Shown here in pieces: positions 25,922-28,900 of a stretch of 64,000 nucleotides of DNA. The stretch lies in assembly GCA_002269645.1 (NCBI GenBank), contig NIVC01002238.1:62001-126000 (forward strand), in the 5' to 3' direction. The stretch's first letter is position 1, and the number at the start of each line of letters is the position of its first letter. The notes under the pieces are model-generated. The model had not been told where the DNA came from, ran no database searches, and was given only the letters and a program-made list of their open reading frames with translations. Position numbers and translations under genes: made by a program. The stretch is from Macrostomum lignano. Taxonomy: Eukaryota.

Positions 25922-28900
25922 ATGGCATCGTCTGTAGATCAGGGCGACAACATCAAGTACATACTGGTGACTGGAGGCGTCATCAGTGGCATTGGCAAAG
26001 GCATTATTTCATCTTCGTTAGGCACTCTACTGAAAGCTTGCGGCTATCGAGTGACATCAATTAAAATTGATCCTTATATTAACATCGATGCTGGCACATT
26101 TTCGCCCTATGAGCATGGTTAGTATGGATTTACTAAGTAATTATATCAAACATTAATATTAGCAGGAAGGCTGTGGGAAGTTGGGAATGCTGGCTCAACG
26201 CCTTCGGCGACATTGTCTCACAGCGTACCAGCGCTGAGGCGATTCTGCTCATTCCTCTGACTCCTGAGCACATACGAGCGCGTGAATCCTTTACGCAGGC
26301 CCGCACTCACACAGGGTGCACAGCGGCGCTGACTTTCTAATCGTCAGGCATGTACACTTATCTTACACCCATAAATCAAGCTTTATTCACCACTCTCTGA
26401 TTCAATGGTGACGCAAGCAGACTATTCAGTTGCGTACTAACCACGGCCAACGCCGCTTAACTTGCAGCGCTGGCTGTGAATGCGCTGACCTACCCAGCTA
26501 AGGATTTCAATAACAGACCGACAAATGACAATGAATAAATAAATAATAGAAAAATCTTCATATGCTTACTCACAGTAGACATTTGGAATGTAGTTTTCCA
26601 TGTATTTTTAATTCGCCTCGCAGGCGAGGTATACGTACTGGACGACGGCGCCGAGGTGGACCTGGATTTGGGCAACTACGAACGATATTTAGACGTCACC
26701 CTGCACAGGGATAACAATATCACCACTGGCAAAATCTATCAGCAAGTTATCAATAAGGAGCGGCGGGGCGATTTTCTTGGAAAGACTGTTCAGGTAATAT
26801 GATCTTTTTTTTCTAACAAATTAGCTAGTTCTAAAAATTTTTGAGTAAACGGTAGGAGTAACTATAACTGTATTATTAGGTCTGAATGCCTTGTCATCGA
26901 ATTAGTGCTGGGCCCCTCGCCAGCTGGCCGGATCTGTCGGCTTGGCCGGGTGTTGCGCATGTATGAGTTTTATGAAACTTTTGAGAGCACGTCGGACAAA
27001 ATACATGCTTGTTTCATTCGCATATAATTGTACCATATTGAGATGATAGCTATAGAGCTATATAGCTAGAGTTACAAATGCAATATGACTTCAAATCTAG
27101 CCATCATCTAAAATTTGTTTCTATATAACTTTCAACCAGGTGGTGCCGCACATCACAGACGCTGTTCAGGAGTGGGTGCAACGAGTCGCCCGCGTGCCAG
27201 TTGACAGCTCCGACCAGATACCGCAGATCTGCATAGTGGAACTAGGCGGAGTCATTGGCGACATCGAGTCGATGCCATTCGTTGAAGCTTTTCGCCAATT
27301 TCAATTTAACGTCGGAGTCAATCGGTTTGCCTGCATCCACGTGTCGCTGGTGCCCGAGCCCAGGACCACTGGCGAGCAGAAGACCAAGCCCACTCAGATG
27401 TCCGTTAGAGAGCTGCGCGCCCTTGGCCTCAGCCCGCACCTGCTGGCCTGTCGCTGCGCCACTCCGCTCAACCAGTCGGCTGCCGACAAGCTGGCCATGT
27501 TCTGTCACGTGGCGCCTGCGCAGGTTGGTGTAGGGATATATAGATAGATAGATAGATAGATAGATAGATAGATAGATGGATAGATAGATAGGTGATAGAT
27601 ATAGGTGATAGATAGATAGATAGATAGATAGATAGATGGATAGATAGATAGGTGATAGATATAGGTGATAGATAGATAGATAGATAGATAGATAGGTGAT
27701 AGATGGATAGATAGATAGATAGGTGATAGATAGATAGATAGATAGATAGATAGATAGATAGATAGATAGATAGATAGATAGATAGATAGATAGATAGATA
27801 GATAGATAGATAGATAGATAGATAGATAGATAGATAGGTAATCGATAGACAGACAGACAGACAGACAGATAGATAGATAGATAGATAGATAGATAGATAG
27901 ATAGATAGATAGATAGATAGATAGATAGATAGATAGATAGGTAATCGATAGACAGACAGATAGACAGACAGATAGATAGATAGATAGATAGATAGATAGA
28001 TAGATAGGTAATCGATAGACAGACAGACAGACAGACAGATAGATAGATAGATAGATAGATAGATAGATAGATAGATAGATAGATAGATAGATAGATAGAT
28101 AGATAGATAGATAGATAGATAGATAGGTAATCGATAGACAGACAGATAGATAGGTAATCGATAGACAGACAGATAGATAGATAGATAGATAGATAGATGG
28201 CTAGATAGATAGATTTATACATATAAAGGGTCATAAGTTGATCAGTTGAGAATATCTGTTATTAGGGACTCCCAGATGCATCAGTGCAATGATTGTCAGC
28301 AAAATAATAGCCAATGGCTGTCCATACCGCCATCACCTGTCCAGGTCATCAACGTGCCGGACGCCAACAGTCTATATAAGGTGCCAATCATGCTGAAAGA
28401 TCAGGGCGTGCATCATTTCCTGCTGCGCCACTTCCAGTTGGACTGCGGCGGCCCCCCGACTCACGTGTCTCTAGACGACTGGCATGAGCTGGCCAAGCGG
28501 TAGGCGCTGCATTTAAATCATTTCTTATCATTTGATATCCCCAGTTCGGACCATTCTGCTCTAATGAGCAGATGTGCAACCGACAGCTCAGCCGCAGCTA
28601 TTGCCCGGCGCATCTGAAGGCTGCGTACGGCTGTTCAGTCCAAGGACTGGGGGATCGCCAGCCACACACCCTCAATTACCCCAGCTAATGCTGGCACCCA
28701 TTTTACAGCTGGGTGAACTGATCCAATGCAGAGTTGAGTGTCTTGCTCAAGGACAAATTGTTCCAGTGGAATCGGGAATCGAACCCTCGACCTTCAAGTC
28801 GTGAGTCCGACGCTCTAACCACTAGGCTACAACCCCCTACTAGGCTACAACCTACTAGCCTACCCTAGAATATTAGAAGTTTCCCTTACCCCTATAATGC

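Follow-up and report, generated by a model that had tools for sequence, protein, structure and literature searches.

A very probable family of miniature inverted-repeat transposons with a 28S-like core in Macrostomum lignano

Among DNA transposons, target-site duplications (TSDs) of 8 bp are typical of hAT elements and are likewise produced by P elements. The capture of host sequences is known from the filler DNA in internally deleted derivatives of Ac/Ds and P as well as from transduplication of the Pack-MULE type. Pieces of ribosomal RNA (rRNA) are spread by SINE28, a short interspersed nuclear element (SINE) derived from 28S rRNA, by SINE3 (5S), and by the Cassandra terminal-repeat retrotransposons in miniature, which carry 5S sequence. 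Many introners resemble miniature inverted-repeat transposable elements (MITEs) and have TSDs, and Mauro and Edelman reportedly described rRNA-like sequences in pre-mRNAs and mRNAs in 1997. Here we consider a stretch of 64,000 nt of Macrostomum lignano DNA (assembly GCA_002269645.1, contig NIVC01002238.1, positions 62,001 to 126,000 of the forward strand), henceforth the window, in which a short block resembling the segment of helices 69 to 71 (H69-H71) of 28S rRNA recurs in and beside two genes. The block very probably represents the 64-nt middle part of a MITE family of M. lignano, that is, of class II transposons that are non-autonomous.

The family shares with MITEs of the hAT and P types a length of 240-300 bp, the absence of an open reading frame (ORF), terminal inverted repeats (TIRs), subterminal repeats, 8-bp TSDs and dispersed copies, together with an insertion polymorphism with a clean empty site and the occurrence of nested and tandem copies. 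It differs from hAT MITEs in its TIR, which starts with CATAC instead of the CAG/TAG-type terminus usual for hAT, and from typical MITEs in its centre, a recognisable fragment of 28S ribosomal DNA (rDNA). As in known cases of host-sequence capture, the founder already contained foreign DNA between its transposon ends, and the two were amplified together; here, however, the DNA presumably captured is no gene fragment but a 64-nt piece from the most conserved part of 28S. SINE28, SINE3 and Cassandra are likewise mobile elements that spread a piece of rRNA sequence, but they are retroelements in which rRNA serves as promoter or body, whereas the present element belongs to class II, possesses TIRs, and carries its 28S piece internally and not as a promoter.

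The 28S-like block and the element around it

The copies in the window are marked by the motif GTAAACGG, which is found at positions 26845, 38979, 39943 and 40485, in all 4 cases on the + strand. By chance 0.74 occurrences are expected, and none of 100 shuffled sequences contained 4 or more. Identities were counted against the published 84-nt duplex of the 28S R2 target: copy 1 agrees in 52 of 65 positions, copy 2 in 52 of 66, copy 3 in 46 of 62, and copy 4, which can be aligned only over its first 29 nt, in 25 of 29. As a second test, two environmental (metagenome) eukaryotic large-subunit (LSU) genes, confirmed by Rfam as LSU_rRNA_eukarya, were compared with the whole window using BLAST. Copy 1 gave the strongest match, with E about 2e-6, followed by copy 2 at about 2e-5. 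The match to copy 3 is borderline (E about 0.15), and copy 4 went undetected in this search. The resemblance of copies 1-3 to the H69-H71 segment of 28S far beyond chance is thereby confirmed, and copy 4 is a short remnant. In addition, TGA precedes GTAAACGG in copies 1, 3 and 4, and alignment to 28S reveals an altered region around AAGG/TAGC across the copies. The original prediction, which was made from the letters of the window, had pointed to four copies with common features foreign to rRNA, and both observations hold.

No rRNA is reported in the window at Rfam gathering thresholds, and in E-value mode the regions 26600-27200 and 38700-40800 as well as the best MITE copy yield no LSU match at E<=10. 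Rfam does recover genuine LSU genes, as checked on those from metagenomes. Since cmscan leaves a 64-nt island of a 3.4-kb model unreported, this null result is no evidence against the similarity to 28S.

For the anatomy of the element, the window was compared with further M. lignano loci gathered by exact protein look-ups, namely L002 and L003, which are homeologous to the CTP synthase locus, and L004-L010, seven further, unrelated loci that contain gypsy pol genes. Together with L001, which lies inside the window, the DNA compared amounts to 285 kb, about 220 kb of it beyond the window; further copies were sought by motif scans and an nhmmer profile. Self-comparison shows that copies 1 and 2 share, besides the rRNA-like block, a second block of the form GGCCGGATC..TTGGCC..GTTGCGCATnTATG, and that an inverted version of this end is also found upstream in copy 2. 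The resulting element is 240-300 bp in length and has no ORF. The 64-nt block (GGGTAAACGG...TTAGT) is located at its centre, and each full copy is bounded by 14-nt TIRs (CATACATGCGCAAC / GTTGCGCATGTATG). In the L004 copy the TIRs are complementary in 15 of 15 positions. The left arm contains three direct subterminal repeats of the AAAAATGCGACTTA type, the right arm one inverted repeat, and upon folding of the element the termini pair (z = -5.4). In total, 8 independent copies or remnants (5 full, 3 partial) are distributed over 4 contigs within the 285 kb (Table 1), and all TIR matches in the examined loci are MITE ends. The 74-nt block that had been proposed as a unit is not one: the unit is the MITE with its TIRs and 8-bp TSDs, and resembles 28S only in its centre. 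The suggestion of a short mobile element derived from rRNA, one of the roles offered in the original prediction, came close to this.

The behaviour of the family is most apparent at a 935-bp composite of two MITE copies in L003 (6867-7801), which is flanked on both sides by a perfect 8-bp TSD, ATTTAAAT. On the left the sequence reads ...ATTTAAAT followed directly by CATACATGCGCAAC..., on the right ...GTTGCGCATGTATA followed directly by ATTTAAATGATTC.... The window and L002 are unbroken at the corresponding site (...CCCTAATTTAAATGATTC...), with a single ATTTAAAT each, and hence provide clean empty sites for the L003 insertion. As the composite is present in L003 and its site is empty in the window and L002, the family still transposed after the homeologs had separated. 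TIRs at both ends, a TSD of fixed length, short non-coding dispersed copies, and an insertion polymorphism with intact empty site are thus found together; along with the nested and composite copies they give the family the anatomy and the behaviour of a MITE. Literature searches for introners or MITEs in Macrostomum and for MITEs carrying 28S fragments returned nothing relevant, and the family seems undescribed in the searchable literature.

Table 1. Coordinates of MITE copies, target sites and the deleted segment. Locations refer to the window unless another locus is named.
Feature	Location	Strand	Remarks
Copy 1, MITE truncated at the 5' end and internally deleted	26836..26965	+	nhmmer model 100-275, E=6e-17
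Copy 2, full-length MITE, 278 bp, subfamily B	38864..39141	+	nhmmer model 1-275, E=1e-82
Copy 2 left flank AGCTAGGA	38856..38863		GCTAGGA again at 39145-39151, 3 nt past the right TIR; imperfect 8-bp TSD
Copy 3, decayed core remnant	39937..40006	+	nhmmer model 103-171, E=7e-8; no recognisable TIRs
Copy 4, 42-nt remnant	40467..40508	+	nhmmer model 90-131, 7 bits, only in a small targeted search
MITE copy	L004 6566-6863	+	same arms around core; perfect 8-bp TSD TGTGGCAA on both sides
MITE copy	L005 5366-5663	-	same arms around core; TSD 7/8
MITE copy	L003 6867-7106	-	same arms around core; part of composite
MITE copy	L003 7098-7801	+	same arms around core; part of composite
Empty target site ATTTAAAT	14899-14906		filled in homeolog L003 by the 935-bp composite
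91-bp segment with the whole core of copy 1	26826..26916	+	missing from both homeologous CTP synthase introns (L002, L003)

Several points weigh against this assignment. No MITE copy was found by nhmmer in the 120 kb of the five other loci (L006-L010), and neither an autonomous partner nor a transposase was found in the 285 kb examined. The left TIR is missing from copies 1, 3 and 4, and the TSD of copy 2 is imperfect. The uptake of rDNA as filler is a presumed step. Finally, the 3' half of the core shares the motifs CCAAAATGC and CTTAGT with the subterminal repeats, which leaves a small door open for the core to matter to the transposon.

We note two further repeats in L003 and in the window. 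Nested within one MITE copy of the composite, just before GTAAACGG, is a foreign element of 394 bp (L003 7232-7625) with termini GAGGTCGGACGGGATCCCGATC... and ...ATCCCGTCCGACCTC and a duplicated target AACTTTGGGTA (about 11 bp, Mutator-like). GC-rich inverted repeats related to it, consisting of GCGGGCAAATCTCGGCGGGCAA units, are found in the window at 13050-13580 and 50490-51222.

Divergence and origin of the core

The consensus core of the family, GGGTAAACGGCAGGAGTAACTATAACTGTCTTATTAAGGCAAAATGCCTCGTCATCTAATTAGT, is identical to 28S in 55 of 64 positions without a gap. BLAST comparison with LSU genes yields E-values down to 8e-13, with matches that are confined to the core and never extend into the arms; the left limit of the homology is GGG and the right limit TTAGT. 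Three departures from 28S recur in all or nearly all copies: G12A (with T instead in two copies and C in one), C28G, and the replacement of AGGTA by TTAAG. This replacement may equally be described as TTA gained and TAG lost exactly at AAGG/TAGC. Because these differences are shared, the block was already part of the founder element. The same observation bears on the possibility that each copy is an independent scrap of rDNA inserted into an intron, either an orphon or a piece of rRNA taken up in the repair of a double-strand break. As such an origin requires, the copies are genuinely similar to 28S, but the derived differences are common to all copies, the arms of the MITE, which are foreign to rRNA, flank the core on both sides, and the homology never continues into further rDNA beyond the 64 nt. 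Shared arms and shared substitutions refute independent scraps, whose probability we regard as practically nil, and bear out the earlier proposal of a single family with its own ancestor.

A retroposed origin, as a SINE derived from rRNA or as a non-autonomous relative of R2 (SIDE-like) that carries the flanks of its 28S target, would account for a block that spans the R2 target and for the fact that its only clustered differences lie exactly at AAGG/TAGC. Such an element would not be expected to have the TIRs and the TSD of fixed length that are present here, whereas a poly(A) or simple-repeat tail, a pol III box, and any R2 3' untranslated region (UTR) or ribozyme sequence between the 28S halves are all missing, and Rfam finds nothing in the element. 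We consider this origin extremely unlikely.

For a MITE, the course of events would be as follows. A transposase acting in trans would bind the terminal and subterminal repeats, excise the element, and reinsert it at an 8-bp staggered cut in a hAT-like or P-like manner. The 28S-like centre would have been present in the founder of the family, having most likely been acquired from rDNA, as filler or by capture, at the time an autonomous element gave rise to an internally deleted form, and would since have decayed neutrally.

With respect to this decay, the core behaves like the rest of the element. Independent copies compared in pairs agree in 78-91% of core positions and in 78-93% of arm positions, and one copy has lost 15 nt within the core. 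In a first multiple alignment the subfamilies seemed to differ less in the core than in the arms; this was an artefact of an extra subterminal repeat unit and is gone in pairwise alignments. The secondary structure of the LSU segment, for which we tested the H69 and H71 pairings, fares no better. In H69, 3-4 of 6 pairs are kept, and no copy can form the pairs 12-30 and 14-28; in H71, 2-4 of 5 pairs are kept, and its 3' strand lies beyond the region of homology. No compensatory change for these pairs is seen in any copy. Natural LSU genes with A12 mostly also carry the compensating change C30T, which the MITE does not. The original prediction had seen in the block a structural mimic of H69-H71 with selectively retained sequence blocks. 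Neither part is upheld: the two H69 pairs are broken without compensation throughout and the homology does not reach the 3' strand of H71; the core diverges like the arms, one copy has the 15-nt deletion, and the core of copy 1 is lost with a 91-bp segment from both homeologs.

It may still be asked whether the 28S piece is of consequence. It could matter to the transposon, perhaps as a record of an rDNA origin at the hot spot of R2 and I-PpoI, or the sense copies in introns, with their perfect H69-H71 matches of 10-23 nt, could titrate small nucleolar RNA guides or enzymes that modify rRNA. A duplication of TTA at TCTTA/TTAAGG does resemble a 3-bp excision footprint, at a site used by many rDNA-specific elements. 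We nevertheless hold a non-inert core to be quite unlikely. The rDNA-derived core is a curiosity, an inert-looking cargo and not a new class of RNA.

Sequences similar to the core are also found elsewhere. The LTRs of a gypsy element in the window contain AACGGTAGGAGTAAC (15624-15638 and 23599-23613), an exact 15-mer of the derived (T-A) core variant present in copies 1 and 2; the match has a BLAST E of about 0.04, may be due to chance, and is not accompanied by any similarity beyond it. In a metagenome collection, the signature specific to the family has 0 matches, and the variant GGCAGGAG is found on 43 contigs. The 4 of these that were checked by Rfam are all real LSU genes whose flanks read as LSU rRNA. 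These loci (L011-L053) are environmental eukaryotic LSU genes with GGCAGGAG in H69, several of which are interrupted at or beside CTCTTAAGG, in the region of R2 and I-PpoI. For example, L011 consists of LSU segments at 1-515 and 5203-5502 that are separated by about 4.7 kb, presumably an rDNA-specific insertion or an intron.

The window copies and their host genes

The splice sites considered here were deduced from ORFs, homology to CTP synthase and boule, and GT-AG boundaries. Copy 1 begins 49 nt into a CTP synthase intron (26794-27139), between an exon that ends in ...GKTVQ at 26793 and an exon that begins with VVPHIT. It consists of the 28S-like core (26843-26906) and a shortened right arm that ends with the right TIR GTTGCGCATGTATG at 26965; the left arm is missing. 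Copy 2, with TIRs CATACATGCGCAAC (38864-38877) and GTTGCGCATCTATG (39128-39141) around a core at 38977-39039, aligns with the full copies from other contigs. It is located 284-561 nt upstream of the ATG (39425) of a boule-like gene, possibly within a putative 5'UTR intron (38772-39359), and is found in the homeolog at L003 22245-22510 with 95% identity. The remaining two copies share an intron of 671 nt (39869-40539) in this boule-like RRM gene. Copy 3 starts 72 nt into the intron and is conserved in the homeolog (L003 23280-23349). In copy 4, the final ~13 nt of the left MITE arm are joined to the initial ~29 nt of the core. This remnant stops about 26 nt short of the 3' splice site (40539) and runs into the polypyrimidine tract; the evidence for it, an nhmmer match of 7 bits and a BLAST match to copy 3 (22 nt at 91%), is weak when taken alone. 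Copies 2-4 are all present in L003, with 95-99% identity. A protein search with boule returned no M. lignano homologs.

The CTP synthase intron offers a natural comparison, since both homeologs lack the segment that contains the whole core of copy 1 (Table 1). A fresh insertion of an rRNA-like piece into the window was considered as an explanation and rejected: the homeologs keep the right arm of the MITE (L002 10984-11028) and its TIR (at L002 11028 and L003 11025) in place. L002 and L003 are 96.4% identical to each other, and each is 93-96% identical to the window. The retained arm and TIR, together with L002 and L003 being closest relatives, point to one deletion in their common lineage. 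As the flanking exons are intact in both, the host gene tolerated the loss of the block.

This deletion bears directly on the idea of a functional intronic RNA, in which a mimic of H69-H71 in the sense pre-mRNA would affect splicing or stability, or would serve as a decoy that attracts factors binding H69 or modifying rRNA. The pattern in the window seems to invite such a reading: 4 of 4 copies are sense to genes on the + strand, three are within 26-72 nt of inferred splice sites, and perfect 28S matches of 10-23 nt survive in several copies. Likewise, the rRNA-like sequences of Mauro and Edelman are short sense matches to 28S within pol II transcripts; here, in contrast, a transposon accounts for the matches, and no observation suggests a function. 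Of the 8 copies, 4 lie in or beside the two window genes, but the other 4 independent copies (in L003, L004 and L005) are outside annotated genes and occur on both strands. Counting copies 3 and 4 as one intron, the pattern in the window reduces to 3 independent insertions in two genes, which are all sense by chance with a probability of 0.25. Together with the core lost from the homeologous introns, the copy that lacks 15 nt, the equal divergence of core and arms, and the damage to H69 and H71, these observations make a functional RNA very unlikely. They support neither the preference for introns, sense orientation and proximity to splice sites that had been proposed for the block nor its proposed role in splicing, stability or as a decoy. 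The original prediction had itself named three observations that would speak against it: copies without bias for strand or intron, uniform decay, and extension into longer rDNA fragments. This is largely what we find, with the difference that the copies run into the arms of the MITE and not into longer rDNA.

Introners, which create introns upon insertion and carry or generate the splice sites, are the remaining alternative. They too form repeat families that lie in introns in sense orientation, many are MITE-like with TSDs, and the motifs AAATTAG and GTAAAC of the present element resemble splice signals. However, the ends of the element are off the splice sites in every copy. The full copy 2 lies amid sequence that is not part of the element, 92 nt past the putative 5' splice site and 218 nt before the putative 3' one. 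The CTP synthase intron runs on for 174 nt past the element and persists in the homeologs that lack the core, and full copies with TSDs are found outside genes, in unannotated or intergenic DNA. An introner is therefore highly improbable. Read as members of a MITE family, the copies in the window comprise one full and one truncated element as well as two remnants, all of which by happenstance are located in or next to two genes on the + strand.

Locus context and implications

The locus of CTP synthase, galactosyltransferase (ORF 34335-35732 on the - strand of the window) and the boule-like gene exists in three homeologous copies on different contigs (window, L002 and L003) with 93-99% identity. 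By an exact look-up, the galactosyltransferase ORF is assigned to contig NIVC01002238.1 of GCA_002269645.1, the Mlig_3_7 assembly of M. lignano. The copies differ by insertions of transposable elements (gypsy and the MITE composite), by the lengths of repeat arrays, and by the 91-bp deletion. Three homeologous loci fit the reported neopolyploidy of M. lignano.

Several other repeats are found in the window. A Ty3/gypsy retrotransposon (15129-23757) is bounded by long terminal repeats (LTRs; 15129-15782 and 23082-23757) that are 96% identical. Its ORFs look intact and encode gag with a zinc knuckle (15956-16885) and pol (17212-21378); an additional ORF of 366 aa (21626-22726) has no Pfam match, and an exact look-up of the pol ORF found it not on record. 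The element is missing from both homeologs, and hence was inserted after their divergence. A tRNA-derived SINE of about 280 nt occurs at 12720-12990 (+), 28563-28840 (-) and 40074-40355 (-) of the window as well as at L003 12520-12801 and 23408-23692. Its tRNA-like head (28767-28836, 32 bits) is the only match in the window at Rfam gathering thresholds, and ARAGORN found no tRNA genes in the window. One SINE copy separates MITE copies 3 and 4 within the intron of the boule-like gene and is unrelated to the 28S-like block; this SINE was considered as the carrier of the block and rejected, as the other SINE copies do not have it.

Just upstream of CTP synthase, at 24477-25473, frameshifted ORF fragments (...HDNARPHTS...PYSLDLAPSDFWLF...) were recognised by eye as resembling a transposase of the mariner/Tc1 type; the region looks like a decayed DNA transposon. 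A tandem array with a period of 16 nt and about 190 copies (88-93% identity) extends from 51398 to 54400. Tandem or low-complexity repeats in or beside genes are found at 27242-28234, 29450-30540, 31300-31935 and 40790-41752. Among them are a microsatellite-like run read as YLSIYLSI, arrays with periods of 33 nt and 30 nt whose copy number differs between homeologs, and an array with a period of 29 codons on the strand opposite to the 3' part of the boule-like gene.

The family calls for caution, as a striking intronic match to the most conserved part of 28S is the cargo of a transposon. Reads from MITE copies may be mistaken for rRNA contamination or for rRNA fragments, and the inclusion of the MITE in the repeat library of M. 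lignano would mask thousands of rRNA-like matches. A MITE founded on the rDNA region that is targeted by R2 and by homing endonucleases is also a small curiosity with regard to the birth of such elements. Since the family moved after the separation of the homeologs, its insertions are usable as markers for sorting the subgenomes of the neopolyploid M. lignano.

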